A stretch of 64,000 bases of DNA from Macrostomum lignano (taxonomy: Eukaryota), in the NCBI GenBank assembly GCA_002269645.1, contig NIVC01001100.1, positions 124,001-188,000 on the forward strand, in the 5' to 3' direction. This document shows positions 2,070 through 64,000 of this stretch, piece after piece. The notes under the pieces were generated by a model that had not been told where the DNA came from, did no database searches, and was given only the letters and a program-made list of their open reading frames with translations. The translations under genes were made by a program, and so were the position numbers. Within the stretch, counting starts at the first letter, position 1. Each line of letters starts with the position of its first letter.

Positions 2070-2261
<192 letters not shown>

Positions 2262-7186: not shown

Positions 7187-7322
7187 TAGTATGAGTAGAG
7201 TGATTCGCTATTTTTTGTGTAATGTACGGAGAAATTCTTATAAATCAGAATAAAAGAAGCGCTGGTCTAGTCAACCTTATGCACAAACATATATGCCATG
7301 AATTTCTGATCTACCGGGCATC

Positions 7323-30454: not shown

Positions 30455-32266
30455 AAACCCAGCCAATCCCAATATCTAAAGGTGTTCTTCAAGGCAACCC
30501 TCTCTCTACCATCCTTTTTGAACTATATATTGACGACATTGTTGAATATCTTGAACTCTCTAGCGCTAGGCGCTCTCTTACGAGATCTGCTTTCCCACTC
30601 ATCCTACTCTTTGCAGACGATCAAGCCATTCTAGCTAAAAACAAAGACGAACTTCAAGACACATTTACGACTATGGAAAATTACTGCAAACAAAATTACT
30701 TGAAAGTAAACGCAAGCAAAACAAAGTTCATGCAGGGCAATACCAGACAAAAAAACGACACAGAAAGCATTGCTACAAAAATATACTACGACAACCAAGA
30801 AATAGAGGAAGTAAATGAATTTAAATACCTGGGAATTATTTTTGAACCAAAAAACAGCTTTAAAAAATGTATTGAACACCAAACTAAGCAGGGATATACA
30901 GCCATGTTTTCCCTACTCCATAGGGTAAAGAATACGTCCCTAGACATCACACTCATTCGCAGACTATTTGACGCGCTTGTTACCCCCGTTATCACTTACG
31001 GTTGTGAGCTCTGGGGCCCTCTGGCTACCATGTCTGATACAAAAGCTATTGATAATATTCAGCTGAAATTCTACAAATATCTCCTCAATCTACCAAAATT
31101 TGCTAGCAACAGTGTGGTATCATCAGAACTTGAGCTTACTCCAATCTCTCAACGAATCGCTAAAACCTACCTCATCTACTGGCTGAAGATTAGACACAAA
31201 AAACTCTGCCAAACGACTCTAGAAATTTTCTACTCAAACACCGGCCAAAAAAATCCATGGAAAATGAATGTACTAAAGAAACTAGAAAGTATAGACCTAA
31301 AAGCACTAACTGAAGATAAACTTTCCCAAAGCTTTAATAACGAGAAATACCTAGTGAAAAAGCACCTCAAGATACACAGAGAAAGAGAACTTAGCCAAAA
31401 GCTAGAGAATCAGCAACATATTAAACTCTACAAAAACGCCTATCTCTACAAAAAAATCTGCAGGCCCGACCTTTCAGATTTCTTTCCATGTACATTTAGA
31501 AACAAAAAATTCTTAACAACCCTCCTAAAACTGAAATGCGAGATTACACCCAACTTTTTTCTCAAGAACCATGTAAAATGTGTGGAGCGCGAAATGGTTC
31601 TGACATTCTACACTACTTGACCGAATGTCCACAAACTGAAGAGATCAGGAAAAAATACTTCTGTCAATACCTCTTAAATAGCAATCAAATACACAAGATA
31701 GGATATGCTACAAATGAAAAAAGAGTCAGAAAAGAGCTCACTGGTGTAGCTAAAATATATGAAGTCATGAATAGCTAAAACAGTTAAACAAACTGAATCA
31801 GATACATCAGCAGTGTAACAAATCCGCTTTTCAGTTGTTTATTCATTTACTGTCTTTTTTAATTTCCTATATTTAAATCGTCGTTATTCGTTAAACGTAA
31901 AATTCTTTCGAAGTATTGTTTATGTTCGTTTTTCACGCTTTGAAATATCACGCGCTTTCAAAAATACTACATCTTTTTTTTTTTTTTACAAACTCGCTTA
32001 CCAAAGTAATCTCGCAATTAAAGCTATACCTCGTAATTTGTACTCATTTTTGTATTAATATTTATACTCGTTGTCACTTTTCGTCTAAAAATACCGTAAA
32101 AATTCTGGCGCGCTTTCAAATACTTTATCTTTTACAATAACTCAGCAAATCGTCGTCAAATCGTCTTTATAAACTTCTATATTCGAAAATTCCAAATACA
32201 TAGCTCTATAATATATTGGCCAAACAGGCTAATTGCCTGAGCCAAATTCTCTTACTACTACTTACT
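30455..32266 (+). mobile_element. 5'-truncated non-LTR retrotransposon (LINE); C-terminal part of reverse transcriptase plus a Cys/His motif, 3' UTR and short tandem tail
   Basis: GVLQGNPLSTILFELYIDD, LLFADD, LKVNASKTKFM and FKYLGIIF are RT motifs. CKMC..DILHYLTECP lies in a second frame (31536-31778). The element ends in cttactactacttact. Clade not assigned. Confidence 0.9.
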
Positions 32267-43000: not shown

Positions 43001-43466
43001 GTCCTAATGGAATTCCCCAAGGGTATTCCAATTCCTAAGGGAATTCCCCATGGCATACCAAGTCCTAATGGTATTCCTCAAGGGTATTCCAATTCGTAAG
43101 GGAATTCCCCAGAGCACGTCAAGTCCTAATGGAATTCCCAAGGGTATTTTTCCCAAGCGATTCCTCTGGCGCTTGCTCCTGAGCTGCTGGTTACCTTAGC
43201 CAACCTAGCCAAGCCAGTCTATTGCTAAACCGCTTCAGGTGATCCGGCTGGAAGGTCAGGTGAAGCGGCTCACGAAGAAGGCAGAGGAGGCTGACGAAGA
43301 GTGCGGCCAGGCCAAGGCGGAGGCGCGCAACCAGAAGCGGCTGGCCAGGGAGCTCGCCAGCGAGGTGGAGGATTTGAAATCTCAGAACAACAGCCTGCGC
43401 CGGAATCTGGAACGGCTGCGGGCGCCGGGCGGCGGCAAAAGTGCTGGCGGCGGCGACGCCTCTTAG
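37811..43466 (+). CDS. LRRFIP2: Leucine-rich repeat flightless-interacting protein (LRRFIP1/2 family) coiled-coil protein; exons 37811-37852, 38512-38598, 39492-39854, 40323-40619, 40969-41121, (42253-42273), 43239-43466
   Basis: Family motifs ELREQLAAMEAQYERALCGNAELASEKQVLAYE, QLEQRDQLIAQ, QREAARQLSDHKYKLATAQQQITALQAD and VIRLEGQVKRL..AKAEARNQKR..EVEDLKSQNNSLRRNLERLRA correspond to the LRRFIP coiled-coil blocks. All modelled exons are multiples of 3 with GT-AG phase-0 junctions. LRRFIP1 versus LRRFIP2 cannot be resolved. Confidence 0.88.
37980..38395. repeat. 23-nt minisatellite (tgatccacagaatactgacccta), LRRFIP intron 1
   Basis: Direct reading. Confidence 0.93.
38645..39488. repeat. Variable-length minisatellite (catgaccttggtttgaacctgaaccctgtgacctctacttt), LRRFIP intron 2
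   Basis: Direct reading; runs into the splice acceptor. Confidence 0.95.
39995..40218. repeat. (TCTG)n plus 20-nt cctgtcttggtgtctgtctg repeat, LRRFIP intron 3
   Basis: Direct reading. Confidence 0.92.
40675..40888. repeat. 25-nt minisatellite (tgtcagtagcggccatagacaaaag) x about 8, LRRFIP intron 4
   Basis: Direct reading. Confidence 0.95.
41310..42050. repeat. gagatcaaggtagatagatagaggt-type purine-rich repeat, LRRFIP intron 5
   Basis: Direct reading. Confidence 0.92.
42860..43150. repeat. About 30/60-nt caagtcctaatggaattcccc-type repeat before the last LRRFIP exon
   Basis: Direct reading. Confidence 0.85.
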
Positions 43467-45116: not shown

Positions 45117-45886
45117 TTCGGTGCTTCATTTTTATTATAAAGTACATTTAACCGTGCTCACTTGTTCGCCAGCCTTCAGCATAGAGTGACCACGCGATTG
45201 GGTTCACTTTGTCTGTACATCAAATAATTGCTACAGCTTTTTAACAAAATTCAATCAAGTTCACTCGCACTTAGCTTTGAAAATTGGAGTTAGTTGTGTA
45301 TCTTACTATATAATTTCGTGATATATCTAGGCTGATGCACCAGTTCAGACTTCATAGCCTGTAAAGTTTAACGAAATTTATGATTGATTCATTTGTGTCA
45401 CTTGCCCTGTCACGATTGCAACAACTCGTGTTGTCCCTGTCCGCGTACGTGTGTTTAAATATATTATTCTATCTATATGACTATTGTTTTTGATTACCGA
45501 TTAAAACTGCAATTTTAAATTCAGCAACACGTGCTGTGTGTTTGTAGCTGAGCTAATTATGGCTAATTATAATTGCAATTTCTTTATCTATTATGCCCAG
45601 TGGTGAGGTCTCATCACACAATGGCATACATGTAACAGTGTCTGCACCGGTTCGCTCGTACTTACCAGTTAACTGTCTCACCTATGCTAGTCAAAAAGCA
45701 TTGAGAATTGGCACATGGCGTCTGTAGCTTCAAATTCTCAGCCTGGGAGTCTACGAATGGTTTTGAGTTTCGCGAATATCCCGCAGCCATGCAGGTACTC
45801 TTTGTCTGGCTGTACCCTAACCTGTTTCTGAACCTATTTTTCCTGCCTGCTACCCTTTCTACCTACTTCTCTCCCTACCTATACTC

Positions 45887-48192
45887 TTCGATGCAGAACT
45901 GGAGACTGCAGGACGTCAAGTCCAACTTCAAGGCCAACCAAGTGCGTCTTAAAAGTTTGCACTAGTTGTTAAAAAGCAGTATTTATTATTTAATTTCATT
46001 TTTATTCCTTTGTCATTATAAAAATTTCCCTACTCCTGTAAAATCACAGATAGCACCGCAACCGCTGCTCTACGATAAATCTTCCCTCTCAATCATGCAC
46101 GGCGTCACAGGTGGGCTAGCCGTGTCAACGCGAACTCGATATGTTCCAGACACTGCTCGGACAGAGATGCAGTACAGCATCAATATCCATGTCCAGGACA
46201 CATCCTCTTCGGAATTCCAAGCAGCAGTGCAGTGTACGCTGAAGCACACAAGTCAGGGTTCTCTGCTCTTGTTGCGTCATGGAGTGAGTTCAACGACCAA
46301 GTTCGTCGCTACGTAAAGGCCAACACTTCTGAATTTTCAGACCTCTTTACCTCATGGAGCGGATTCCAGGACGAAGTCCGCCGGTACGTAGAGCAGTACA
46401 CATCGAGATTCTGTGGCATATTTACCTCATGGAGCGGCTTCGATGCTCAAGTGCGGCAGTATGTACTAAGCCATGAAGGAGAATTCGCTACACTTCTTGG
46501 AGTGAGCTCTAAAGCTCCAGACACTTCATCGTCGGAATTCCGTGCTTTAGTTCTTAAATACATCGAAGAAAACAAAACAGACTTCACTAATATCTTTGCA
46601 AGTTGGAACACTTGGCGATCACGTGCGTCTCTATTTGAAGGCCCATACCTCCGAGTTTTTCGACATATTTACGTCGTGGAGTGGCTTTGAATCACAAGTT
46701 CGAATATATATTCAAACGTATAAAGAGCAATACAGCGACTTACAACTCTCCAAAACAGAGGAGATTGACACATCTCCAGAATTCCGCGCCTTGGTGCTGA
46801 GGTACTCCCAAGAGCACAAGCCAGAGTTCTCAGCCATCTTCATCACATGGAGCGAGTTTGGCGACCAAGTGCACCGCTACGCGAAAGAGCACACGTCGGA
46901 GTTCTCCAGCATCTTTGTCTCGTAGAGCGGATTCCGCAGCCAAGTGCGTAGCTACGTGCAGGAGAACACTTCGGAGTTCTCTGACATCTATCTCAACTGG
47001 GAGGGTTTCGAGCCGCAAGTGCGTGAATATGTGCAGAAACAGGAAAGCAAGTTTGTCGAGCTTCTCCCCGTCAGGACTAAAGAGATTGACACTTCGTCGC
47101 CAGAGTTCCGCGCCATGGTGCTGAGATACGTTGAGGAGCACAAATCGGAGTTTACCTTTATCTTCGCCACGTGGAACATTTTCAGCGACTACGTGCAGCG
47201 CTACGTTAAAGAGAACACGTGGGAGTTCACAGAAATCTTCTCCTGGAGCGGAGTCGAAAGTCAGATTAGAAATCATGTGCGTAAGAACTCAGAGAAATTC
47301 TCCGCCCAGATCACTGTGCAGGCGAAGGAGATCGACACGTCGTCGCCAGAATTCCGCGCCTCCGTGCGGAAGTACGTCCAAGCAAACAAGTCAGAATTTA
47401 CCGCCATGTTCGTTACCTGGAACGAGTTCGAGGATCAAGTGCGCCGCTACGTCGAAGAGCACACACATCGGAGTTCTCTAGCATCTTTGTGTCGTGGAGT
47501 GGATTCGAAACTCAAGTTCGGCAGTATATTCGAACACACGAATACAAGTTTAGTGAGCTGAAACAGCCTGATTCCTCGTCACCGGAGTTTCGCTCAATGG
47601 TTTTAAAGTACGTTCGAGAACACTTTCCAGAGTTTCTATGACCTTTTCATCTTAGAGCGCCTTTGAAATTCGGCGTTATGTTCTTCAGCACGATACAGAG
47701 TTTATTGCGTTGCTTGGCTGCATTCGCGAAAAGGATAAACAGACTTTGCAACTGATTTCCTCCAGTGGCTGTTGTAATGAGATTTCATGGACAATTTCTG
47801 AATCTGTTTTTCACTATGAACGAAACGATGAATCTTTATCTGTGATCCATTCAGGCAAACCAGCCGTTGGAATGACGGCCTTTGAGCCACCAAATGCAGC
47901 TGACGAAAGACTTGAAAGAAATTTGTCTGACTTAAGCACAGGATTCTCGTTCGTTCATAGACCTACGCTCGTACAACATCTGGCGACATCAAAACAACTG
48001 AATCAAGAGAGTACATGTCGTTCGGATCTCGAACAGAGTCGGTTCCCTTCGGTGTTCAGGGCATTGTATCGGGAGCTACTGGATCACGCGCCGTTAACAT
48101 CGGCGGATCGGACGGAGAGATGCTAGACTTATCCGGATCGAGAACTAGCCGATATTCAGCCTACCCAGGGAGAGTCGTATGGAATATCGGAT
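45887..48192 (+). pseudogene. Decayed partial duplicate of the plakin-like gene's penultimate exon end, intron and giant exon
   Basis: 45887 onward (ttcgatgcagaactggagactgcaggacgtcaagtcc..) matches 54295 onward, including the intron. It carries about 6 diverged DTSSxEFR units and one 207-nt unit (48009-48192), with frameshifts (about 46615, about 47465) and an in-frame TAG at 46923-46925. Confidence 0.8.
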
Positions 48193-49397
48193 CAACAGTT
48201 TTATAACTCATCTATTAGTATAGCATTTGAATAGGATATGAAGCTCAGAAAAAAAGTAAAATATTTTAGCATAACTTACAGAAACCAACTAACAAAAAAG
48301 CAGTTTAATTGAAGTGCATACTTTGCTGTTGGGATTTTTTTCAGCGACTATTTATCCATAGTTTTTCTTATTTTCGCACTGTTTAGAAAATCGATTTTAA
48401 CCCTGCATGGTTATTAATTTTTTACGCTCTTAAGTTTTACTTTGAACCAAATCTTTATATAGTGTGTAGCTGTCTTTAGTTTTAACAAAATTAACTAACG
48501 TAGAATTAGATTTAAAACTTATGACTACTAGCTCTTATTTATGGTTTTTTAAAGATTTTTCTGAATAACAAAGTTACCCATAATTACACATTTTGCTGAG
48601 TAGAAAGAATTTCAATTAGCTGCGAATTCTTTTACGTAACAATAAATTAACCATTTCTCTTTCGCCAAAAAACTTTTTTACATATTTTTTAAATTAAATA
48701 TATACCAACTAAAGTGCGAAATATTTAACACTCATTAAAACACGATAACTAGTACCAATTTCTTGTTAATCTTTATTTATTACGTCAACGGAAGCGATGT
48801 TCTGTAAGGCGTAAGAGGCACACTGAACAAGTGCGCCATAAGCTTAATTCTCTTGATACTCTGGTGTCCACGGAGAAACCTAGTTGTTTTCCAATTATGA
48901 GCGTAAATGAAAAAAGAGAATTAGAAGAAAACGAAGGTATGGAAAATAAGATTGGAGCAGAGGGGGTGTAAAGATGAATTCAACTCAGCGAGCAGAGCTT
49001 TGCAAAGCAGTTGCGATTCATATGGAGCTCAAGCGGCCAAGCCAAGGAGTGATGGCGAAAGGCTGCGGCTAAAGATGGAATTCTTGCAAACTTTGGAAAA
49101 CTGTCCACCTTGCTTCCTTTTATGAGACAAAAAGTGCCTTATTATTCAAAGCCAGCCGTTAAAGGCGTAAACGTTTTTACCCCGCGAGAGGGGTCAGAGT
49201 GAGCCTGCCAGGGGGGGGGGGGGCAAGAAGAGATGCAGACAGCCCTGAGTCCGTGGGTCGTTCGGTGCGCTTCAAGTAAGTTGGGCGGCAGACTGTCTGG
49301 CCTGCTTTAGAAATGCAGTTCTTCCCACTGTGCCACTCTGCTCTGGTGTGTTGTTTTACGTCTGCGCCTCCATTCTGCTCTGTCTGTGCTTCTCCGC

Positions 49398-49833
<436 letters not shown>

Positions 49834-50397
49834 CCCTATTATCTGTCCACATTAATTATTTATTTCTTTCTATTCTCTCGTGCAGAGCCACCTTTTAATT
49901 TCTATCTCACTTGGTTTTGTTGCATTTTTTAACTCAATGCTGGCTTGAAAAGCTGTAAGAGTTTTTCGCTGCATCTACTTGCTGTTCAAGCGTCGTCAAT
50001 AGGCTTACTTTGGACTCGGGAGGTGCAGTTGAGAAGCTCCACCGCCACTGGACAGTTGCTGAATGAATGCTAAAGGAACAATAGACAGGCAAAAAAGAGA
50101 TTCGGTGGGTCTTTCAATGCCTTTCAATGTTGGGGTTATTAAAGCGGGCAGCCATCTCCAGTATGCGCCTTCTCTGCTGCTCACAGAACCCAGCACTGTT
50201 TTTCTCGAAAGACAGCCCCAGTTCTGACTAAAAATTAGCAAAGCTTTTCAGCGCATTAAACCTACAGTAGCTTAACTCTCCTTGTATTTCAGAAATCTTA
50301 ACTACCCTTTTTCCGAACGGAAGAATCGAGATTTAGTGAGTGGTTTATATTTTTTCGAATCGCTGGAAATTCGATATAGTACTGTATGTTGCTATAT

Positions 50398-50717
50398 GGG
50401 ACTGGAGTGGGATTCTGTAGGGACTGGAGTAGGATTCTGTAGGGACTGAAGTGGGATTCTGTAGGGACTGGAGTAGGATTCTGTAGGGACTGAAGTGGGA
50501 TTCTGTAGGGACTGGAGTGGGATTCTGTAGGGACTGAAGTGGGATTCTGTAGGGACTGAAGTGGGATTCTGTAGGGACTGGAGTGGGATTCTGTAGGGAC
50601 TGAAGTGGGATTCTGTAGGGACTGGAGTGGGATTCTGTAGGGACTGAAGTGGGATTCTGTAGGGACTGAAGTGGGATTCTGTAGGGACTGGAGTGGGATT
50701 CTGTAGGGACTGGAGTG
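50398..50717. repeat. 22-nt minisatellite (gggattctgtagggactggagt)
   Basis: Direct reading. Confidence 0.95.
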
Positions 50718-50825: not shown

Positions 50826-53800
50826 GTGACCCTTGATCGCCTCTCAATGACGGCTGTGGCGACGGCGCATCAGCAGGAGATTGATCAGTGGCTGCAGGAC
50901 AACCGAGATGACGTGAAGTCAGCTGCCATCGGCTGCACTCAGCAGGCGCTGCTGTTTCAGCAAACCAAGCAGGCGGTCCTGCTGGAGGAGATCCAAGCGC
51001 TTGAGAGCCAGCTTGATGAGTCCAACAAGTCCGCGGCAGCGTCCCTCACCAAGCTGAAGGCAATGGAGAGTCAGATTGGCGTGAACCAGCAGGCGCTGAA
51101 TTACCTCCAGCAGGTGACGTCGCTTGAGACGGCAGTTATGTCAGCCGGTCAGCAAGTGATGGAGAAGGCACTGCAGATGTCCAAAGTGACCGATGGAGTC
51201 GTCCTGGAAGCTAAGAAGGTGAGAAAAGAACTCAACCTTATTGAAAATCTGTGCGAATACAATTGACCAAAGAAATCTACATACGAGCCTCGTATGTCAA
51301 TTTCTAAGCTGCAAGGGAGTAGGCTAATAAGATTGGGGTGAATTTATGAGTATGCCATGCGTATGAAGGTCCGATGTTACGGTGGGCGGCAACCTTGCTT
51401 GTGATCTGGGTGTATGAGTTTATCAAACTCAGGCGTCGACAAAATCTACATCCAGAGACAGATGAGAGAGGAGAGAGAATTAAGAAGAGAGAATAGTTGA
51501 GAGAGTAGAGAGGAGAGAGGAGAGAGAAGATTAGATGAGAGGTAGGATCAGAAAGTCTAGAAAACAATTTAATGTCCTATTTCAATCCAAAATCTTGACG
51601 GCTCTCTAGAAGCTACTGGTAGAACAAGACAGCTGATGAAGCAAGAAACGGGTAAAGCCATATACTACGCTACTCGTAGTTAGAAAATCGAATTGGCGAA
51701 TATTTCCTCCCAGGAGCTGTCGGCCGAGGTCCACGGCACCTGGAGCTGGGTGAGCCAGCTGGCCGACCTGAACCGGCTCCACACCCGCAACGCCGCGGAC
51801 TACCAGACCTTCCACCACAGCGCCTACGAGCTCAACGCCATGCTTAACAGCCGAGCCAGCAGCAGCAGCGCCGCCATTGCCGCCATTCCCGCCAACGGGA
51901 TGCTGGGCTCCATCAAGCGCATAAACACCGTGCTCACTGTAAGTAACCTCTTTTCAGTTTCAATATGGGCTTGAAATACTCAAACCGCACACTTCAAAAG
52001 TAAAAGCCTCCTCGAACCTCTGCAGGACAACTTGGCCCAGTTCAACCGGCTGTGGCAGCTGTCAGTCGACCTGACGCAGCGCAGCCGAGCTGTGGTGCCG
52101 CTGCACCTGCGTTTCAGCACTGACGCCATCCCGTTCGCGGGCAAGAACGTGTTCAAGTTCGATGACGGCGAGGTAAGTGCCAACTGTATTGCAGAGTTAA
52201 TTACATATTTGATGGCGCTCGCCCCATCATATTCGGACACCTGCGAGTGGAAGTTGCGCCTGAAAACCTCTGCACACTACTGACTGAGTAGTGCCGAGAG
52301 AAAATGAAATGAAAATGAAAAACGGCAAAGCAATTAGCATACCCACAATAAAAATGATGGGTGTCTACACGTACTCCTAGAATGCGGGACTGGTCCTGGG
52401 CTATCGCAAGGTTGTTTTACTTCCTCCTAGCCTTGCGTTACTTTTTCTCCTAATTGGAAACCAAGCACTTTTGAGTGGCGCATTTGCCAGTATTTCAAAT
52501 ATTTGCACACAAAAATCTGCTGTCTTCCGTACGATCGTATGGCCTCTCACTCCCCACAGACGGTCCTGGAGCCGGGAGAGCAGGTGACTGTCATCGACAA
52601 CTCCCAGTCCCACACGTGGACGGTGAGGCGCTCGGATGGAAGCGAGGTCGAAGTGCCCAGCACCTGTATCTGGCTTCCGCCGGCCGATCCGCAGGCAGTG
52701 CAGCTCGCTATCGGGTTTGTGGGAATCTTATTATAAAAATACTTCTTTATTGCTCACTCCTTGTCTTGAGCGCATGAAGTCTTAAAAGTGCTTTGATAAT
52801 TAAAAAAAGATTAGGCATTTAGAAAAGCAGTAGTTTTGCATTTAAGAACTGAAAAGCGAACTCGTTGCGGTTTTTAGGCTGAGAAGAAAGCTGCTGAACA
52901 CCTGGTCACAAGTTCTGAACAGTCTGCGACAGTGGATCGCCGAGTTCTTTGATTCCTACTTGACCCAGATGCTCAAGAGCCCTGTGGTGAGTGCTTTTTG
53001 ATCATTCGAGTGAAAATTTTCTGATCATAATAACCATACCGTTACACCTAAAAACAAAAGCCAGCTTTAGCGTGTAGTTAATATATAGGATAGCAGTTTG
53101 CGACGTTTGCAAAGTGCTTTCGGAGTGGAGATACTGAACGATCTGTGTTCGCTTTTATTGCAATCGAAACTCGCGACGAAATCGACTGCTTTGGGCGCGG
53201 TGGGCACTCTTGAGTTCTCAAAGAGCCAGGCGCAACAGTCAAGCTGTATCGGTGCACGTCTTAAAACAAAATTGTGCTATTCTTTGAACATTTATTCGTG
53301 CAGACAGATTCTTTATTGCATTTTGGTATTTCTTTCTATATAATACCAAATATGAAAAGTGATACATAGAATGGCTTTATTTCAAGTTGAAACATTAGTT
53401 TTTAGCGACTTTTATAATAGCATCCAAGGATTCTCCACCTCAGCTTATACATACGCCACTTGCATATAAATATACTTATGTATAGACATGCTTTTTATAG
53501 TACTCGTAAAAGTACAATTTTCAAATCTACTCATTGCCGTCTACAGGGGGTAGCCAAAAAAATCAAGGACGCTGTGACTGAATTTCTTAATTCGCTGCGT
53601 CAGTCGAGCCAAACATTCCTGGGCGTTGACGATCAGTTTACGGATCGCATTGTCAAATCCATCGATAAAGTGCTTGAAAAGATGACAATCTGCGGTGAGA
53701 ATCTGATTCAAAAATACCTTATTAATACCAGAATACTTTTCTGTAAACCAACTAATTCGATACAAGTTTTAGTGAAGAAATGTAACCGTAAATGCAGAAG

Positions 53801-56800
53801 TAAAGTACTTTGATGCTTATTAATGTCCCATGAACGAATTTTTTGTTTACTTTAGAAGGTCCAACGGCATCCCTAGTGGACAGAGAACTAATAATTCTAA
53901 AGGCCTGTCTAGCCAAGCTACAGGAGCACCTGAACGAATGGCGTCATTGCTCAAATGAAGCTACAGAAGCTGAGACCGAGCTGCAAGGCCGGACCGCTTT
54001 ATCGAAGGAGTCTTCTGAAGTTCTGGTGCGCATCGAACTGCTTTCGTAAGTCGGACGGACCATTTTGATTTGCTGGAATTTATCTTGTTAGGCGTGGCGT
54101 GCGTTCTGACACCTCCCACCTCTGAAGGCCACTTGTGGTCGGCGTGAGGTGCAAATTTTTGTTGTTCTTGTTAGACTTTTGTAATCACACGTGATTAAAA
54201 TACATGTAGTCTAAAGGGACTGCACTTTAATTTCTCTTTTCACAAGCAGACAGCTGCAAGAAGAGTCCCAGTCTAAGTTTGAGGAGCTACAGCGTTCGAT
54301 GCAGAACTGGAGACTGCAGGACGTCAAGTCCAACTTCACGGCCAACCAAGTGCGTCATAAAAGTTTGCACTAGTTGTTAAATGGCAGCATTTATTATTTA
54401 ATTTCTCTTTTTAATTAGTCATTATAAAAATTTCCCTACTCCTGTAAACATCGCAGAGAGCACCGCAACCGCTGTTCTACGATATATCTTCGCTCTCAAT
54501 CATGCACAGCGTCACAGGAAGACCTGCCGTGTCAACGCGAACTCTTAATGTTCCAGACACATCTGAGACAGACGAGCAATACAATAAAAGATCAGAAGAA
54601 AAAGTTACTGCTGAACTAACGGTGAAAAAATACAATATTGACACTTCGTCTTCGGAATTCCGTGCACTGGTACAGAAGTACGTCGAAGAGAACAAGTCGG
54701 ATTTCGCAGCGATCTTTCGCACCTGGAGTGAGTTCAAGGAGCAAGTGCGTCTGTACGTCGAGGAGCACACGTCAGAGTTCTTGAACGTTTTCACCAAGTG
54801 GAGTGGCTTCGATGATTATGTTCGAAAATATGTGCAGCAGAACCAAGAAAAGTTCATCACAGTGCCTGCCGTCAAGACTAAGGAGATAGACACTTCATCT
54901 TCGGAATTCCGTGCACTGGTGCAGAAATACGTCGAAAAGAACAAGACCGAGTTTATCGCCTTATTCGTTACCTGGAGTGAGTTCGAAGAACAAGTGCGTC
55001 GCTACGTCGAAGAGAACACATCGAAGTTCTCTAGCATCTTTTTTTCGTGGAGCGGATTCGAAAGAAAAGTCAAGCAGTACGTGGTGAAGAATGAAGAGAA
55101 GTTTGCTACGCTTCTTCCCGTCAAGACCAAAGAGATAGACACTTCGTCTTCGGAATTCCGTGCACTGGTACAGAAGTACGTCGAAGAGAACAAGTCGGAT
55201 TTCGCAGCGATCTTTAGCACCTGGAGTGAGTTCAAAGAGCAAGTGCGTCTGTACGTCGAGGAGCACACGTCAGAGTTCTCGAACGTTTTCACCAAGTGGA
55301 GTGGCTTCGATGATTACGTTCGAAAATATGTGCAGCAGAACCAAGAAAAGTTCATCACAGTGCCTGCCGTCAAGACCAAAGAGATAGACACTTCGTCTTC
55401 GGAATTCCGTGCACTGGTACAGAAGTACGTCGAAGAGCACAAGACCGAGTTTACCGCCATGTTTGTTACTTGGAGTGAGTTCGAGGAGCAAGTGCGTCGC
55501 TACGTCGAAGAGAACACATCGAAGTTCTCTAGCATCTTCTTTTCGTGGAGTGGATTCGAAAGCAAAGTCAAGCAATACGTGGTGAAGAATGAAGACAAGT
55601 TTGCTACGCTTCTTCCCGTCAAGACCAAAGAGATAGACACTTCGTCTTCGGAATTCCTTGCACTGGTACAGAAGTACGTCGAAGAGAACAAGTCGGATTT
55701 CGCAGCGATCTTTAGCACCTGGAGTGAGTTCAAAGAGCAAGTGCGTCTGTACGTCGAGGAGCACACGTCAGAGTTCTCGAACGTTTTCACCAAGTGGAGT
55801 GGCTTCGATGATTACGTTCGAAAATATGTGCAGCAGAACCAAGAAAAGTTCATCACAGTGCCTGCCGTCAAGACCAAAGAGATAGACACTTCGTCTTCGG
55901 AATTCCGTGCACTGGTACAGAAGTACGTCGAAGAGCACAAGACCGAGTTTACCGCCATGTTCGTTACTTGGAGTGAGTTCGAAGAACAAGTGCGACGCTA
56001 CGTCGAAGAGAACACATCGAAGTTCTCTAGCATATTTTTTTCGTGGAGTGGATTCGATGAAAAAGTGCGTTGGTATGTCGAAAGCCATGTGTCTAAGTTT
56101 AGTGATATCTTCGTTAATTGGACCGGTTTTGAAGCAAAAGTTCAACAGTACGTGATGCAAAATGAAGAAAAGTTTAAAATATTGTTTGATGTTAAAAGCA
56201 CTGAGCCTGATCTTTCATCACCAGAATATCGGGAATTGGTTTTAAAGTACATTCAAGAAAACATGTCCGAGCTTTTTATCATTTTTACAACCTGGAGTGG
56301 TTTTACGGCTCAAATCCGTCGCTATGTTCAGCAGCACGAAGACGATTTTATTAAGCTGCTAGGCTGCGTTCGCGAATCAAAAAGTTCAATCCACACAGGC
56401 GAATCGCTTAAAATATCGGATACAGTGAAGACGACCGAAAGCAGCGAGTACAAGTCGTTCGGATCTCGAACGGAGACGGCTCCTGTCGGTGTTCAGGGCA
56501 TTGTATCGGAAGCTACTGGGTCACGCGCCGTTAACATCGGCGGATCGGACGGAGAGATGCTAGACTTATCCGGATCGAGAACTAGCCGATATTCCGCCTT
56601 CCCAGGAGAGTCGTATGGAACGTCGGATACAGTGAAGACGACCGAAAGCAGCGAGTACACATCGTTCGGATCTCGAACGGAGACGGCTCCTGTCGGTGTT
56701 CAGGGCATTGTATCGGAAGCTACTGGGTCACGCGCCGTTAACATCGGCGGATCGGACGGAGAGATGCTAGACTTATCCGGATCGAGAACTAGCCGATATT

Positions 56801-59800
56801 CAGCCTTCCCAGGAGAGTCGTATGGAACGTCGGATACAGTGAAGACGACCGAAAGCAGCGAGTACAAGTCGTTCGGATCTCGAACGGAGACGGCTCCTGT
56901 CGGTGTTCAGGGCATTGTATCGGGAGCTACTGGATCACGCGCCGTTAACATCGGCGGATCGGACGGAGAGATGCTAGACTTATCCGGATCGAGAACTAGC
57001 CGATATTCAGCCTTCCCAGGAGAGTCATATGAAACGTCGGATACAGTGAAGACGACCGAAAGCAGCGAGTACAAGTCGTTCGGATCTCGAACGGAGACGG
57101 CTCCTGTCGGTGTTCAGGGCATTGTATCGGAAGCTACTGGGTCACGCGCCGTTAACATCGGCGGATCGGACGGAGAGATGCTAGACTTATCCGGATCGAG
57201 AACTAGCCGATATTCAGCCTTCCCAGGAGAGTCGTATGGAATATCGGATACAGTGAAGACGACCGAAAGCAGCGAGTACAAGTCGTTCGGATCTCGAACG
57301 GAGACGGCTCCTGTCGGTGTTCAGGGCATTGTATCGGGAGCTACTGGGTCACGCGCCGTTAACATCGGCGGATCGGACGGAGAGATGCTAGACTTATCCG
57401 GATCGAGAACTAGCCGATATTCAGCCTTCCCAGGAGAGTCGTATGGAACGTCGGATACAGTGAAGACGACCGAAAGCAGCGAGTACAAGTCGTTCGGATC
57501 TCGAACGGAGACGGCTCCTGTCGGTGTTCAGGGCATTGTATCGGGAGCTACTGGGTCACGCGCCGTTAACATCGGCGGATCGGACGGAGAGATGCTAGAC
57601 TTATCCGGATCGAGAACTAGTCGATATTCAGCCTTCCCAGGAGAGTCATATGAAACGTCGGATACAGTGAAGACGACCGAAAGCAGCGAGTACAAGTCGT
57701 TCGGATCTCGAACGGAGACGGCTCCTGTCGGTGTTCAGGGCATTGTATCGGAAGCTACTGGGTCACGCGCCGTTAACATCGGCGGATCGGACGGAGAGAT
57801 GCTAGACTTATCCGGATCGAGAACTAGCCGATATTCAGCCTTCCCAGGAGAGTCGTATGGAATATCGGATACAGTGAAGACGACCGAAAGCAGCGAGTAC
57901 ATGTCGTTCGGATCTCGAACGGAGACGGCTCCTGTCGGTGTTCAGGGCATTGTATCGGGAGCTACTGGATCACGCGCCGTTAACATCGGCGGATCGGACG
58001 GAGAGATGCTAGACTTATCCGGATCGAGAACTAGCCGATATTCAGCCTTCCCAGGAGAGTCATATGAAACGTCGGATACAGTGAAGACGACCGAAAGCAG
58101 CGAGTACATGTCGTTCGGATCTCGAACGGAGACGGCTCCTGTCGGTGTTCAGGGCATTGTATCGGGAGCTACTGGGTCACGCGCCGTTAACATCGGCGGA
58201 TCGGACGGAGAGATGCTAGACTTATCCGGATCGAGAACTAGCCGATATTCAGCCTTCCCAGGAGAGTCGTATGGAACGTCGGATACAGTGAAGACGACCG
58301 AAAGCAGCGAGTACAAGTCGTTCGGATCTCGAACGGAGACGGCTCCTGTCGGTGTTCAGGGCATTGTATCGGGAGCTACTGGGTCACGCGCCGTTAACAT
58401 CGGCGGATCGGACGGAGAGATGCTAGACTTATCCGGATCGAGAACTAGTCGATATTCAGCCTTCCCAGGAGAGTCATATGAAACGTCGGATACAGTGAAG
58501 ACGACCGAAAGCAGCGAGTACAAGTCGTTCGGATCTCGAACGGAGACGGCTCCTGTCGGTGTTCAGGGCATTGTATCGGAAGCTACTGGGTCACGCGCCG
58601 TTAACATCGGCGGATCGGACGGAGAGATGCTAGACTTATCCGGATCGAGAACTAGCCGATATTCAGCCTTCCCAGGAGAGTCGTATGGAATATCGGATAC
58701 AGTGAAGACGACCGAAAGCAGCGAGTACATGTCGTTCGGATCTCGAACGGAGACGGCTCCTGTCGGTGTTCAGGGCATTGTATCGGAAGCTACTGGGTCA
58801 CGCGCCGTTAACATCGGCGGATCGGACGGAGAGATGCTAGACTTATCCGGATCGAGAACTAGCCGATATTCAGCCTTCCCAGGAGAGTCGTATGGAATAT
58901 CGGATACAGTGAAGACGACCGAAAGCAGCGAGTACATGTCGTTCGGATCTCGAACGGAGACGGCTCCTGTCGGTGTTCAGGGCATTGTATCGGAAGCTAC
59001 TGGATCACGCGCCGTTAACATCGGCGGATCGGACGGAGAGATGCTAGACTTATCCGGATCGAGAACTAGCCGATATTCAGCCTTCCCAGGAGAGTCGTAT
59101 GGAACGTCGGATACAGTGAAGACGACCGAAAGCTACGAGTACAAGTCGTTCGGATCTCGAACGGAGACGGCTCCTGTCGGTGTTCAGGGCATTGTATCGG
59201 AAGCTACTGGGTCACGCGCCGTTAACATCGGCGGATCGGATGGAGAGATGCTAGACCTATCCGGATCAAGAACTAGCCGATATTCCGCCTTCCCAGGAGA
59301 GTCGTATGGAACGTCGGATACAGTGAAGACGACCGAAAGCAGCGAGTACAAGTCGTTCGGATCTCGAACGGAGACGGCTCCTGTCGGTGTTCAGGGCATT
59401 GTATCGGAAGCTACTGGGTCACGCGCCGTTAACATCGGCGGATCGGACGGAGAGATGCTAGACTTATCCGGATCGAGAACTAGCCGATATTCAGCCTTCC
59501 CAGGAGAGTCGTATGGAACGTCGGATACAGTGAAGACGATCGAAAGCAGCGAGTACAAGTCGTTCGGATCTCGAACGGAGACGGCTCCTGTCGGTGTTCA
59601 GGGCATTGTATCGGAAGCTACTGGGTCACGCGCCGTTAACATCGGCGGATCGGACGGTGAGATGCTAGACTTATCCGGATCGAGAACTAGCCGATATTCA
59701 GCCTTCCCAGGAGAGTCGTATGGAACGTCGGATACAGTGAAGACGACCGAAAGCAGCGAGTACAAGTCGTTCGGATCTCGAACGGAGACGGCTCCTGTCG

Positions 59801-60645
59801 GTGTTCAGGGCATTGTATCGGAAGCTACTGGGTCACGCGCCGTTAACATCGGCGGATCGGACGGAGAGATGCTAGACTTATCCGGATCGAGAACTAGCCG
59901 ATATTCAGCCTTCCCAGGAGAGTCGTATGGAATATCGGATACAGTGAAGACGACCGAAAGCAGCGAGTACATGTCGTTCGGATCTCGAACGGAGACGGCT
60001 CCTGTCGGTGTTCAGGGCATTGTATCGGAAGCTACTGGGTCACGCGCCGTTAACATCGGCGGATCGGACGGAGAGATTCTAAACTTATTCGGATCGAGAA
60101 CTAGCCGATATTCAGCCTTCCCAGGAGAGTCGTATGGAATATCGGATACAGTGAAGACGACCGAAAGCAGCGAGTACAAGTCGTTCGGATCTCGAACGGA
60201 GACGGCTCCTGTCGGTGTTCAGGGCATTGTATCGGAAGCTACTGGGTCACGCGCCGTTAACATCGGCGGATCGGACGGAGAGATTCTAAACTTATTCGGA
60301 TCGAGAACTAGCCGATATTCAGCCTTCCCAGGAGAGTCGTATGGAATATCGGATACAGTGAAGACGACCGAAAGCAGCGAGTACAAGTCGTTCGGATCTC
60401 GAACGGAGACGGCTCCTGTCGGTGTTCAGGGCATTGTATCGGAAGCTACTGGGTCACGCGCCGTTAACATCGGCGGATCGGACGGAGAGATGCTAGACTT
60501 ATCCGGATCGAGAACTAGCCGATATTCAGCCTTCCCAGGAGAGTCGTTTGGAACATCAGGTGCCGTCACCCACTTCAGTGAAAGTGACAGTGCTAGTCCT
60601 CTATTCTCATTCACGGGTGGCCGCATGCGAAATATTGTAGACTAG
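50826..60645 (+). CDS. Plakin-domain protein (spectrin repeats + plakin SH3) with a giant repetitive terminal exon; exons 50826-51218, 51714-51938, 52026-52172, 52560-52714, 52878-52986, 53547-53694, 53856-54045, 54247-54349, 54457-60645 (about 2545 aa from ATG 50847)
   Basis: VHGTWSWVSQL..NAADYQTFHH, RSRAVVPLHLR and VLEPGEQVTVIDNSQSHTWTVRRSDGSEVEVPSTCIWLPPADPQAVQLA match the plakin spectrin-repeat/SH3 region of desmoplakin, dystonin and MACF1. All eight junctions are GT-AG with matching phases and lead in frame into the 2047-aa ORF. The 5' end is uncertain (acceptor at 50825; first in-frame ATG at 50847). Confidence 0.8.
54457..60645 (+). CDS. Giant exon of the plakin-like gene (2062 codons): 83-aa aromatic repeats followed by 20 x 69-aa S/T/G-rich repeats
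   Basis: Uninterrupted 6.2-kb ORF. Acceptor CATCGCAG|A at 54456 is in phase with the upstream exon. All repeat units are multiples of 3 (249, 498 and 207 nt). Confidence 0.85.
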   Translation, partial: RAPQPLFYDISSLSIMHSVTGRPAVSTRTLNVPDTSETDEQYNKRSEEKVTAELTVKKYNIDTSSSEFRALVQKYVEENKSDFAAIFRTWSEFKEQVRLYVEEHTSEFLNVFTKWSGFDDYVRKYVQQNQEKFITVPAVKTKEIDTSSSEFRALVQKYVEKNKTEFIALFVTWSEFEEQVRRYVEENTSKFSSIFFSWSGFERKVKQYVVKNEEKFATLLPVKTKEIDTSSSEFRALVQKYVEENKSDFAAIFSTWSEFKEQVRLYVEEHTSEFSNVFTKWSGFDDYVRKYVQQNQEKFITVPAVKTKEIDTSSSEFRALVQKYVEEHKTEFTAMFVTWSEFEEQVRRYVEENTSKFSSIFFSWSGFESKVKQYVVKNEDKFATLLPVKTKEIDTSSSEFLALVQKYVEENKSDFAAIFSTWSEFKEQVRLYVEEHTSEFSNVFTKWSGFDDYVRKYVQQNQEKFITVPAVKTKEIDTSSSEFRALVQKYVEEHKTEFTAMFVTWSEFEEQVRRYVEENTSKFSSIFFSWSGFDEKVRWYVESHVSKFSDIFVNWTGFEAKVQQYVMQNEEKFKILFDVKSTEPDLSSPEYRELVLKYIQENMSELFIIFTTWSGFTAQIRRYVQQHEDDFIKLLGCVRESKSSIHTGESLKISDTVKTTESSEYKSFGSRTETAPVGVQGIVSEATGSRAVNIGGSDGEMLDLSGSRTSRYSAFPGESYGTSDTVKTTESSEYTSFGSRTETAPVGVQGIVSEATGSRAVNIGGSDGEMLDLSGSRTSRYSAFPGESYGTSDTVKTTESSEYKSFGSRTETAPVGVQGIVSGATGSRAVNIGGSDGEMLDLSGSRTSRYSAFPGESYETSDTVKTTESSEYKSFGSRTETAPVGVQGIVSEATGSRAVNIGGSDGEMLDLSGSRTSRYSAFPGESYGISDTVKTTESSEYKSFGSRTETAPVGVQGIVSGATGSRAVNIGGSDGEMLDLSGSRTSRYSAFPGESYGTSDTVKTTESSEYKSFGSRTETAPVGVQGIVSGATGSRAVNIGGSDGEMLDLSGSRTSRYSAFPGESYETSDTVKTTESSEYKSFGSRTETAPVGVQGIVSEATGSRAVNIGGSDGEMLDLSGSRTSRYSAFPGESYGISDTVKTTESSEYMSFGSRTETAPVGVQGIVSGATGSRAVNIGGSDGEMLDLSGSRTSRYSAFPGESYETSDTVKTTESSEYMSFGSRTETAPVGVQGIVSGATGSRAVNIGGSDGEMLDLSGSRTSRYSAFPGESYGTSDTVKTTESSEYKSFGSRTETAPVGVQGIVSGATGSRAVNIGGSDGEMLDLSGSRTSRYSAFPGESYETSDTVKTTESSEYKSFGSRTETAPVGVQGIVSEATGSRAVNIGGSDGEMLDLSGSRTSRYSAFPGESYGISDTVKTTESSEYMSFGSRTETAPVGVQGIVSEATGSRAVNIGGSDGEMLDLSGSRTSRYSAFPGESYGISDTVKTTESSEYMSFGSRTETAPVGVQGIVSEATGSRAVNIGGSDGEMLDLSGSRTSRYSAFPGESYGTSDTVKTTESYEYKSFGSRTETAPVGVQGIVSEATGSRAVNIGGSDGEMLDLSGSRTSRYSAFPGESYGTSDTVKTTESSEYKSFGSRTETAPVGVQGIVSEATGSRAVNIGGSDGEMLDLSGSRTSRYSAFPGESYGTSDTVKTIESSEYKSFGSRTETAPVGVQGIVSEATGSRAVNIGGSDGEMLDLSGSRTSRYSAFPGESYGTSDTVKTTESSEYKSFGSRTETAPVGVQGIVSEATGSRAVNIGGSDGEMLDLSGSRTSRYSAFPGESYGISDTVKTTESSEYMSFGSRTETAPVGVQGIVSEATGSRAVNIGGSDGEILNLFGSRTSRYSAFPGESYGISDTVKTTESSEYKSFGSRTETAPVGVQGIVSEATGSRAVNIGGSDGEILNLFGSRTSRYSAFPGESYGISDTVKTTESSEYKSFGSRTETAPVGVQGIVSEATGSRAVNIGGSDGEMLDLSGSRTSRYSAFPGESFGTSGAVTHFSESDSASPLFSFTGGRMRNIVD
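54638..56380 (+). repeat. Coding tandem repeat, 249-nt (83-aa) units alternating A/B (498-nt higher order), about 7 units
   Basis: EIDTSSSEFRALVQKYVEE recurs near 54638, 54887, 55136, 55385, 55634 and 55883, with a variant near 56207. Confidence 0.9.
56416..60555 (+). repeat. Coding tandem repeat, 207-nt (69-aa) unit x 20
   Basis: tcggatacagtgaagacga recurs every 207 nt from 56416 to 60349; unit SDTVKTTESSEYKSFGSRTETAPVGVQGIVSEATGSRAVNIGGSDGEMLDLSGSRTSRYSAFPGESYGT. Confidence 0.95.
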
Positions 60646-63144
60646 ATTTCTTTACCTGAGCTGGAAATTCTCAGGTAGGAAAGAAGCTGAGCGAAAAGTT
60701 AAAGAAATTTGGAACCTGCGCTCACTAACGTAAATTGTTTGGAGGAAATGGCTTTTTAGCTTTTTAGTACTTTTTTTGTAACAGTTGTATTACCTTTTTT
60801 CATATCGCCCTTCATTTTTTAGCGGAAAAACGTTGCGTTGTTTTAATTTCCCCAGCGAATTCTTTACTAGCGAAAGTGTCTCCAAAGTAACTATAGTGTT
60901 TGTATGGAATGTGTTTTAATTTTTTCCCTTGGAAGTTTTTAGCCATTGTTATTGTTGGTTTCTTGAGTCCTACTGGTAGGCCTTAAGCAAATTTTCAATC
61001 ACAATACCGTAGAAACATAACAATTAGATGGTTCACTCTGGAGCATTTTTGCTCTACATCTCAGGCTGGAATTGAAAAAGCAGAGAAGTTGCCAAAACTT
61101 CAGTTAGTGAGCTTTAGAGAGCAGTATATTGTATTGTCCAAGTCAATATCGTACTTGCAGATAGGAAAAGTATTAATGGCTGCTACTGAATCTGTGGTGA
61201 GTGGACTATCTAGTGTTTAAATTACTCGTAGTACCTTTATCCTTATCCAAATTTGAAATTAATTTGTGTGTTAATACCTGAATTGCACGTCGCGTGTTAT
61301 ATTTTATGCTTAGAAAAGTAACCCCACACCAAGACCATTTTTTCCATCTAACAACATCAATATTTATTTTTTTAGCGCCTTAGTAGAGTTTCCAATAAAA
61401 ATATATACTTTACTCTCTCGATGACTAGGTTGACTAGATGCTTTACGCTACATTAACACAGCATTGATTGATTCCGCACCGCTCACCACTCAAGTACTCG
61501 TAGAAGTAAAAAGCTCATTAGCGAATTAAGGAATTTTCCTGTTCCTAGCAGCAGCAAATTTTACTTGAGCCATCTCTGGCTTGCGTTATATCATGATAGA
61601 ACATTCACAACGATATGATTATGTGCCGTCGTGCCGAGATCTCCCACAAAAAAGACCGAAGACTTCGTGACCTATGCCGCTGAGAAAACTTCACAACAAG
61701 CGATTTTCCCCGCACCCTTGCACTAAGAACCCATGTTCTATCTACTATCTATCTATTGTATATACGCTAGTATAAACGTCTGTATTAACGTTTGACGTTT
61801 GAGAAGACCCACTCGTACTCTCATCTGAAGTTAAACAAGAAAAATCAGGAGGACTGTCGCAGCCGTCACGAAAAAAAGTACTAAACCGATATTTCCACAG
61901 TGGACTGGCCTTCGTCAGGGCTGCCAGCATATTCAACAAAATGCAATGAAAACATATGGTCATTGAGGACTAAAAAATATGCATTGAGAGTTAATTTATA
62001 CCCGGTAAAGTTGTGGTGACCCCGTCGCACGCTGCTCAATTGCTCACTCTATTGATAAAGATTTGATCAATGCCATCAGTGAGGCTAGGCAGTTTATAGG
62101 GCAGAGAATGTCCTTTAGAGAGCATGTTCGAGTGTACGCAGCAGCAGTTGCCCTTGTATATGGTTTCAGAGAACAGCGCGAATTTCGTGTACAATGCTTG
62201 TAGACCTGGGGACAGTGCTATGAAGCTCGGATTAGGAGTCAAGTGTCTCCTAACTCTTGATGCAGCAGCGCGTGCTAAGAAGAAGGAGCAAATTCTGGGA
62301 GTTAGAAGTGAATGAGGCCACGTTAGGGGTGAACTTAAAAAAGTGAGCGTATTATAAAACTAGGACTAAATATTCCACTCCTAACTGCTAAGCCAAGCGT
62401 TCAAGAGCCAATGGACTCTCCAAGATCAATCAAGAATAAGTCGTAGAGCATAAGAGACTGCACAAGGCTGCAAATCAACTTAGACTTGATTTAGATTGCG
62501 TAACCATATTGTTAATTGCTATGACTTCTTCTCTAGAGGAAGACAGTAAGACAAGATCAACAATGGTGGATTGTATATAGTAGGTAACCTCGTGAAATAA
62601 TGGCCAAACGCGAGTGCGCTAACGCACAGCGATGGTTCAATGAAAAATTTTTTAGCGGTCATTTCAGCCTATTTGAGTTTCGCGCGGCCATTGTTTCAGG
62701 CTAGCGAGGGCGGCCATTATTCAGCCCAACTGAAGGGACAGCTGGGTTGATTTGACCATAGACTATAAGAAACAGTATAGACTTGAACCAAGTGGTGTTT
62801 GGAACTTTGCATAAATGATCAAGAATTCAGACTTTAGTTGAAGTTTGGTCCCTAAAGCTTTCTGCTTTTTAACAGTTATTTTTATTTTTTATTATGGTGC
62901 TTATTACCTGGTCCAATCTTCCATTGGACAGCCTAAACGAAGTGAGTAGCAATGAATTAGAGTTTCTTTCTGAGATAAGTTTAAACGAGCATCAAAATGA
63001 CACCGGCTTGAGCGAGTTCATCAGCTGGATTGAAAATCCTGCGGCTGAGTCTGCAGACCTGCCCGAGCTGCCTATCGACGAAGATGCAATCTGCTCAATA
63101 TTGCCCTTGTAGTACCTCAGTAGTACCTCAGGTACTGCTTCTGT

Positions 63145-63490
63145 CGTGCAGGCAGTTGTCGTGCAGGCAGTTGTGCAGTCAGTTGTCGTGCAGGCAGTTG
63201 TCGTGCAGGCAGTTGTCGTGTTGTCGTGCAGGCAGTTGTCGTGCAGTCAGTTATCGTGCAGGCAGTTATCGTGCAGGCAGTTGTCGTGCAGGCAGTTGTC
63301 GTGTTGTCGTGCAGGCAGTTGTCGTGCAGGCAGTTGTCGTGCAGGCAGTTGTCGTGCAGGCAGTTGTCGTGTTGTCGTGCAGGCAGTTGTCGTGTTGTCG
63401 TGCAGGCAGTTGTCGTGTTGTCGTGCAGGCAGTTGTCGTGCAGGCAGTTGTCGTGCAGGCAGTTGTCGTGCAGGCAGTTGTCGTGCAGAC
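63145..63490. repeat. 15-nt (gtcgtgcaggcagtt) plus 8-nt (gtcgtgtt) repeat
   Basis: Direct reading. Confidence 0.95.
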
Positions 63491-64000
63491 ACTTGTCGTA
63501 GAAGTAGAACTATCTAAATTTGGGGGATCTGGAACGAGGTTGCTCTGAAAAAAACTTCCGCCCCCCCCCGAAGACAGGTGGCCTAATCTAAGGAAAAATC
63601 CTCCTGACTACACATTAGCATACCCGTGTCCGTCCCAAAAATTTAAATGAGAGAGAGAGAGAGAAGGCTGTGACAAAAAATAAATGGGTAAGCTTCACAA
63701 ACGTCCTCCAGCACAATGTCTGGCAAAATTGCGCAGGTCTTGCACGGCAGCAAGGCACAAGAAGGGTTAGGAAGCGGGTGGTGACTGGTTCTGTGCAAAG
63801 TTCGAGGCATTTTGTCTCCTTCTTTCTTCCTTACTTTTTGCTAGCATAACAATAGCTTATAGCTAAAAACCTAAAGAACTGTGGAGTGTGGAGGCAGGAC
63901 AAGGTTAGGTTGTGAGCTCTGAGTTGCCGCACCGAACTCCGCTCGCACCAGCAAAATCTTAGACGGCTGAGACTGCTAGACGTTCTATCGTTCAGAGGAG

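Follow-up and report, generated by a model that had tools for sequence, protein, structure and literature searches.

A predicted Macrostomum lignano gene joining a short plakin-type head in phase to a giant exon of lineage-specific repeats

The window analysed here is a stretch of 64,000 nucleotides from the flatworm Macrostomum lignano, and coordinates are given throughout as positions in this window on the + strand. At 50826-60645 it carries a predicted gene, named gene A in this analysis, in which eight small exons are followed by a giant exon of 6.2 kb and joined to it in phase. The assignment to M. lignano agrees with the spliced head, the part encoded by the small exons, which is 98% identical to UniRef entry A0A1I8GR27 of this species. 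The gene model was rebuilt by three-frame translation and inspection of the exon borders. All introns are of the GT...AG type (phases 0, 0, 0, 2, 0, 1, 2 and 0), no internal stop codon occurs, and the splice sites are kept in both homeologous loci described below. From the ATG at 50847 a product of approximately 2,545 amino acids (aa), approximately 277 kDa and an isoelectric point of 4.9 is predicted. The original prediction, made from the letters of the window alone, had proposed this exon structure together with the in-phase join of 54349 to 54457. Our rebuilt gene and two models from an older assembly (P0001 and P0015) agree with it; the junction is present in both models and an equivalent one is retained in the paralogues. 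The openness of the array of 207-bp repeats within the giant exon is in itself poor evidence for a gene, because amplification of one open unit yields an open array. An open frame of 2,063 codons whose in-phase partner is a head with significant domain matches is far beyond chance, and gene A reads as an intact in-phase gene at the sequence level.

Exon 1 (50826-51218) encodes a helical region N-terminal to the portion that can be aligned with known plakin domains. The alignment with spectrin repeats 4 and 5 (SR4-SR5) of plectin and desmoplakin begins in exon 2 (51714-51938, phase 0/0), the match to the SH3_10 family opens at approximately 52098 in exon 3 (52026-52172), and the bulk of the plakin-type SH3 domain, which extends until approximately 52679, is encoded by exon 4 (52560-52714), ending in phase 2. 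Behind the SH3 domain follow the helical exon 5 (52878-52986), exon 6 (53547-53694), which includes a run of seven A at 53556-53562, and exon 7 (53856-54045). Exon 8 (54247/54250-54349) possesses a tandem NAGNAG acceptor (CAAG/CAG/A, 54244-54250), both sites of which are in frame and give products differing by one Arg. The exon itself had been placed correctly in the original prediction, but with the acceptor at 54247, whereas all database models use 54250 (...ELLS/QLQEE...). An open reading frame (ORF) at 53089-53250 was considered as a ninth small exon and rejected, being out of phase and missing from every paralogue and database model.

The giant exon (54457-60645) encodes a tail of 2,063 aa, so that the proposed giant tail is found as described, if not with the length of 2,060 aa given for it. 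It starts with a non-repetitive linker of 61 aa (54457-54639; RAPQPLFYDISSLSIMHSV...), a motif of which is conserved in paralogues B and C, and ends with a unique C-terminus (60556-60645) of 29 aa (SGAVTHFSESDSASPLFSFTGGRMRNIVD) plus the TAG stop codon at 60643-60645. Between these parts lie a helical repeat region (54640-56370) and an array of twenty near-identical 207-bp units (56416-60555). The sequence after the TAG is AT-rich and non-coding, and the sole AATAAA 3' of gene A is located at 61394.

At the 5' end, exon 1 stands directly after an AG acceptor (CTGACAG/GTGACC), and a TGA immediately upstream closes the frame. The first ATG in the exon is the one at 50847 (MTAVATAHQQ...), and the GenBank models P0005 and P0010, from the homeologous loci, begin at the equivalent ATG; older database models begin right at the acceptor (VTLDRL...). 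The same 5' layout is found in the downstream paralogue (CAG/GTGAATTCGGTCAAGATG). In M. lignano, 30-39% of the genes are trans-spliced to a 35-nt leader ending in ATG (PMC8629364; PMC5730564). Trans-splicing at 50826 would place the ATG of this leader in frame, and exon 1 probably either receives the spliced leader at this position or follows an intron in the 5' untranslated region. Two minisatellites, at 50398-50717 and 49313-49932, occupy the would-be outron or promoter region upstream of exon 1; one repeats a 22-bp unit 14.5 times, the other a short unit reading IYLS in one frame, and both contain long accidental ORFs.

The eight small exons encode 490 residues, and the head comprises about 483 aa of the product. 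In a Pfam search, SH3_10 (PF17902) was matched over its complete profile (positions 1-65) by residues 231-295 of 490, with an E-value of 1.3e-11 and 44.8 bits (cut-off 22.8). A single-sequence search against the PDB gave the plakin domains of plectin (3pe0, E 2.6e-8) and desmoplakin (3r6n, E 2.8e-8) over residues 133-328 as the sole significant matches. With a family profile, the E-values improved to 5.6e-9 and 5.9e-9, and residues ~114-328 are covered over both searches. The plakin SH3 domain and its flanking spectrin repeats are thus confined to the first ~480 aa, as had been expected. A full-length plakin domain runs from SR3 to SR9 and comprises about 900-1,000 aa. The head is best described, judging from these alignments, as a short plakin-type domain around SR4-SR5 and SH3 plus flanking helices.

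Searching the whole protein against Pfam revealed no Spectrin, Plectin-repeat, CH, EF-hand or GAS2 family. The absence of actin-binding CH domains ahead of the head had also been claimed and holds: in the interval from LRRFIP, which ends at 43466, to exon 1, inspection of the ORFs yielded no CH-like ORF but only a paralogue fragment and minisatellites, and a tblastn search of the entire window with two hand-written CH-domain queries gave a best E-value of 2.3 and no CH domain. The 3' end of the LRRFIP-family gene was located at 43239-43466 (+), and the Pfam LRRFIP family was found on the GenBank product at positions 1-1391 of the homeologous locus L001. Since LRRFIP lies directly upstream, it sets a limit for any missing 5' exons of gene A.

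For the helical repeat region, Tandem Repeats Finder reported a 249-bp period at 54640-56060, and a better description is a 498-bp super-repeat of 2.8 copies with 96% matches, in which an odd and an even unit together make up 166 aa. When the 83-aa units are cut at a conserved Trp, a module of the form SxFxxxVRxYVxxxTSxFxxIFxxW becomes apparent. In total 22 modules of 25-29 aa are present in seven units: five units are triplets of 83 aa, one holds four modules and one holds two. The two repeat periods of 83 and 69 aa named in the original prediction therefore stand, with the correction that the 83-aa unit is itself a triplet of smaller modules. The F/V/Y/V/F/F/W positions are conserved over all 22 modules and in the paralogues A, B and C. 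In a Nei-Gojobori comparison of odd with even units, the proportions of differing non-synonymous (pN) and synonymous (pS) sites were 0.19 and 0.67, the synonymous sites being near saturation. The ratio of non-synonymous to synonymous substitution rates (dN/dS) was 0.12-0.18 in all unit comparisons, including those with the fragment upstream of gene A, and the modules have accordingly long evolved under constraint at the protein level.

A structure was predicted with AlphaFold2 for two units, using an alignment built from units of gene A, the upstream fragment and one paralogue. The model reached a predicted local distance difference test score (pLDDT) of 74 and a predicted template modelling score (pTM) of 0.59. 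In each module a helix of 11-13 residues is followed by a shorter helix (helix-kink-helix), and the Pro-containing segment PVKTKEIDTSS forms a linker between units. A run without alignment, on 398 aa across both repeat types, gave a pLDDT of 37 and was discarded as unusable. Foldseek searches of the pLDDT-74 model against the PDB returned only long-helix noise (best E 2.3, template modelling score at most 0.17), and PDB sequence searches with both repeat types, for the module with a profile, gave nothing below an E-value of 0.3. As the module matches no PDB fold or PDB sequence, it is neither a spectrin nor a plectin repeat. A Pfam search of the tail with E-values up to 1 or 10 likewise detected no Plectin repeat, spectrin, EF-hand or GAS2/GAR family, so that the claim of a tail outside the known plakin modules held in the Pfam, PDB and Foldseek searches alike. 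A coiled-coil rod is not indicated either, on the indirect grounds that the helices of the model comprise 4-13 residues and that aromatic residues are frequent, F making up 10%, no dedicated coiled-coil predictor having been run. Several Pfam matches on the module region (VQ motif with 68 bits, DUF3106, PfUIS3, Mrr_cat and others) were dismissed; they are sums of tiny matches and mostly vanish in a single-unit scan. DUF285 (PF03382) is a borderline case with 25.3 bits for a 162-aa stretch (cut-off 25) and 18.5 bits for a single unit, which we read as two aromatic repeats that probably share a similar period rather than as homology.

To what extent the module is related to known repeats was addressed by searching 1.84 billion representative proteins with a HMMER profile built from the units; seven of them reached an E-value of 0.001. 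Of these, P0004, P0001 and P0005 are plakin-head proteins of M. lignano, three others were rejected as translated simple repeats or unrelated repeat proteins, and the seventh is a bacterial LRV-repeat protein (P0008, E 1.9e-5 library-wide; confirmed as LRV by Pfam with 194 bits). A search for proteins with a word-index tool returned only gene A itself for the module region; this is a weak negative, because the same tool missed a paralogue head of 97% identity. As far as the searched libraries reach, the modules appear restricted to plakin-head paralogues of M. lignano, in line with the lineage specificity proposed at the outset. The match to P0008 raises the alternative that the 25-aa module is a very diverged LRV or HEAT-like alpha-alpha solenoid and that only the 69-aa repeat is unfamiliar. 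Module and LRV have a common VRRYVxENTS core and periods of 25 and 26, AlphaFold2 gives a long and a short helix per module, and hhalign aligned the module profile with the repeats of P0008 at 94% probability over 62 columns with 31% identity, P0008 having been picked after the fact. However, such scores are inflated by repeats, and although LRV is an established Pfam family, a single LRV protein was obtained at E 0.001. Neither LRV, LRV_2 nor the HEAT models of Pfam match the tail even at an E-value of 10, there is no PDB sequence match and no Foldseek match to any solenoid, and the second half of the module (KFSSIFFSW) is unlike that of LRV (TPPDVLTKL). We consider a solenoid origin of this kind unlikely; among known patterns LRV comes closest to the module, but we do not take it to be the module's family.

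For the second repeat type, Tandem Repeats Finder detected a 207-bp period at 56416-60554 with 20.0 copies and 97% matches; the 20 copies vary at 21 nucleotide positions, and about half of the variable sites are synonymous. The encoded 69-aa unit is rich in Ser (18.6%), Gly (14.6%) and Thr (11.1%), together 44%, contains 8.6% Glu, has a net charge of -3 and includes three GSR tripeptides, which gives 60 per protein. Traces of a higher-order period of three units are seen in the combined variants E32G and G68E (units 3, 6, 8 and 10) and in the variant T69I (units 4, 7 and 11, plus 12 and 17-19), and this pattern indicates amplification in blocks of 621 bp. No match to the unit was obtained in Pfam, in the PDB or in the word-index protein search, the last being a weak negative. 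A diverged copy with 86.5% nucleotide identity (pN 0.10, pS 0.23) is present in the upstream fragment. The unit is consequently older than the present array and predates the split between A and B, while the array as it stands must, on these sequences, have been amplified or homogenised recently.

Gene A does not stand alone. The fragment upstream, paralogue B (45879-48206, + strand), is truncated at its 5' side in the middle of exon 8 and retains the short intron and the linker motif, followed by approximately 18 degenerate modules and one 69-aa-like unit. With at least three frameshifts and an in-frame change of Trp to stop at 46923-46925, it is most likely a piece of a pseudogene. In A0A1I8HNL6 (P0015, 2,314 aa), an ab initio model of earlier date, this fragment is crossed by predicted introns and fused to exon 1 of gene A, a connection that we regard as a prediction artefact. 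Two homeologous loci in the GenBank assembly GCA_002269645.1, L001 and L002, are 92-99% identical to the window and share the order LRRFIP, fragment B and gene A, with a further paralogue, gene C, approximately 5-7 kb beyond (27676-43766 in L001, 25182-39922 in L002). In the window, gene C would start approximately 2 kb past position 64000. It has eight head exons of its own and an ATG of its own behind an acceptor; its tail combines a single 83-aa unit with approximately 10 kb of giant exon made up of 49-aa SGCF...SGCY repeats. The older model P0012 represents pure gene C, including the first exon of that gene. A and C agree at 94-100% of positions in exons 2-4 but at just 55-85% in exon 1 and exons 5-8, a mosaic suggestive of gene conversion across the SH3 region. 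With A, B and C, three or more types of paralogue thus exist, each with a different C-terminal repeat, and gene A belongs to a small tandem family that appears restricted to the M. lignano lineage. The copy number also differs between loci: the window has 20 units of 69 aa, and L002 has 17, more modules and an intact frame of 2,107 codons. UniProt already holds partial models of gene A as uncharacterised "SH3_10 domain-containing" proteins; these, the 25-aa module, fragment B and the tandem family had not been part of the original prediction.

Taken together, we hold it to be rather probable that the region contains a plakin-head gene of M. lignano with a repeat tail, belonging to a tandem family, for which a combined docking and spacer role can be proposed. 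The points that weigh against this reading concern, first, the protein itself. Residues 1-113 and 329-483 of the head have no sequence match, so that just ~200 of its 483 residues can be aligned to plakin domains. For the 69-aa unit, AlphaFold2 in single-sequence mode gives a pLDDT below 40 with a few short strands, and the unit falls on the charge-hydropathy boundary, where the plot decides neither for nor against disorder. Its alternating hydrophobic stretches VGVQGIV, AVNIGG and EMLDLS could equally form strands.

The second group of adverse points concerns transcription. The GenBank annotation of the Mlig_3_7 assembly rests on RNA-seq as well as trans-splicing and poly(A) evidence (PMC5730564). 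These RNA-seq-guided models skip the giant exon of gene A at both homeologous loci, where no coding sequence is annotated over it, and transcripts that leave it out were just what the original prediction had named as speaking against itself. Two models with spans of 23-26 kb (PAA82667.1 and PAA76993.1) join gene A exon 1, or exons 1 and 2, to the exons and tail of gene C. No expression entry was found for Mlig021572 or Mlig010347 in full texts and paper supplements, and a literature search combining Macrostomum with plakin, plectin or desmoplakin gave nothing relevant. The two long models could mean that A and C form one transcription unit, in which the 5' plakin exons of gene A serve both tails, and either exons 5-9 of A or the cassette of C is added by alternative splicing, much as vab-10 and shot differ at their 3' ends. 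The giant exon of A would then be just one isoform, possibly a minor one. Apart from the RNA-seq guidance of the annotation, this is favoured by the identity of the first exon in both models, 100% to exon 1 of gene A versus 85% to that of C, and by the near identity of exons 2-4 against the divergence of the other head exons. However, the point at which the models pass from A to C differs between the loci, lying behind exon 1 in one and behind exon 2 in the other, which fits ambiguous mapping among near-identical exons better than a defined splice, and gene C possesses complete head exons with an ATG behind the acceptor. Given the differing switch points and the pure-C model P0012, we think that PAA82667.1 and PAA76993.1 are mapping chimeras, and a shared 5' part appears improbable.

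The third group concerns the integrity of the gene. In L001 the giant exon is broken into three ORFs, and the A7 run of exon 6 is A8 in L001 and L002, which shifts the frame; the A8 version keeps it only by way of a TAG acceptor 7 nt downstream. The difference between A7 and A8 may be either a homopolymer error or real. Compared with the window, 12 synonymous and 15 non-synonymous changes were counted over the head exons of L001, and 9 and 13 over those of L002; the non-synonymous ones are concentrated in exon 1, where they form the majority. Gene A could accordingly be a duplicate that is young, in decay or silent and hence effectively a pseudogene, with a frame that stays open only through recent amplification of the arrays. 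The 97% identity of the 69-aa copies, the clearly dead paralogue fragment adjoining the gene, the giant exon lacking an annotated coding sequence at both loci and the abundance of minisatellites with long accidental ORFs in this genome would all suit such a history. Against it, the 6.2-kb frame in the window shows no interruption and continues in phase from eight exons that are likewise intact, the ORF of the giant exon is also intact in L002, and the frameshifts fall within homopolymers or repeats and, the assembly being PacBio-based, could be errors. Between homeologues, exons 2-8 carry more synonymous than non-synonymous changes, which is mild support for constraint, and the low dN/dS of the modules, reached with synonymous sites near saturation, speaks against a silent gene. 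We therefore rate decay or silence of gene A as quite improbable.

Returning to a plakin-head gene with a repeat tail, its mode of action may be pictured as follows. By analogy with the plakin domain, the head would dock the protein to a junctional or membrane-associated partner, and the stiff array of modules together with the long 69-aa array would serve as a spacer or as a multivalent binding platform towards the cytoskeleton. Each paralogue would add a tail cassette of its own to a head of common type. A role in junction anchoring or as an elastic spacer, in the epidermis or in the adhesive organ, may be imagined by pure inference. It is doubtful that the module constitutes a new helical repeat fold and that the family of A, B and C, with its plakin head and exchangeable tail cassettes, is a flatworm-specific set of cytolinkers taking the place of the plakin-repeat domain in linking junctions to the cytoskeleton, be it in the epidermis or in the filament-rich anchor cells that belong to the adhesive organs.

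Further minisatellites, open over long frames on one strand or on both, were observed across the window, at 1939-4310, 7277-10243, 12609-13364, 17704-18114, 20036-20780, 23674-24361, 26862-28166 and 63030-63548. Their abundance agrees with the high tandem-repeat content reported for the M. lignano genome, and because such arrays carry open frames, caution is required in calling repeat ORFs genes. By eye, three other features were noticed. An ORF of 403 aa at 30409-31620 (+), in an AT-rich stretch and with a reverse-transcriptase-like FADD motif, is probably a fragment of a non-LTR retrotransposon. At 3073-4617 (+) a likely coding exon has repeated GG...W motifs recalling kelch repeats, and another likely coding exon at 14151-14732 (+) resembles ADP-ribosylglycohydrolase-type sequences.

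If the proposed reading is true, three tandem paralogues with different tails on near-identical head exons would show that the plakin domain can be used as a portable docking unit to which locally invented tails are attached. The repeat module would be of interest as a repeat without structural relative, for which clear coding constraint and a model of moderate confidence are at hand. Should gene A prove silent, the locus would still be a record of giant exons built up by tandem duplication and minisatellite growth in this neopolyploid genome. Transgenesis and in situ hybridisation are established in M. lignano, and its filament-dependent adhesive organs have been studied (PMC5730564). The function of gene A would therefore be directly testable in this species.

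In known plakins, the plakin domain docks to components of hemidesmosomes and desmosomes (PMC5979291). With the plakin domains of plectin and desmoplakin (3pe0 and 3r6n), gene A has in common the plakin SH3 within helical, spectrin-like repeats, over ~200 residues and with E-values of ~1e-8. In contrast, its head is just ~483 aa long, can be aligned only in the middle and is not preceded by a CH actin-binding region, and its tail has no plakin-repeat domain, spectrin rod or EF-hand/GAR modules, nor, although no dedicated predictor was applied, any indication of a coiled-coil rod. The LRV repeat (PF01816) resembles the module in its period of ~25-26, in a VRRYVxENTS-like core and in a longer and a shorter predicted helix; it differs in its second half, in the missing Pfam and structural matches and in being essentially bacterial. 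The 69-aa unit recalls the C-terminal GSR region of MACF1, as both are rich in Ser and Gly, contain GSR tripeptides and lie C-terminally in a plakin-domain protein. GSR repeat regions are also carried by the tails of desmoplakin and plectin. The 69-aa units are, in contrast to these regions, acidic and share no detectable sequence similarity with them, so that the likeness is compositional only. With regard to gene architecture, VAB-10A of C. elegans is a case similar to the gigantic Shot isoforms of Drosophila. In the latter, one large exon encodes plakin repeats (PMC2173965). The repeats in the giant exon of gene A are unrelated to the plakin (plectin) repeat and the other spectraplakin modules are missing, but the two genes are alike in having a very large repeat-coding exon within a plakin-family gene. 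Plakins are defined by few fixed module combinations. A plakin head followed by lineage-specific repeats only would, as far as the sequence can tell, be a new combination among them and not a new kind of system.

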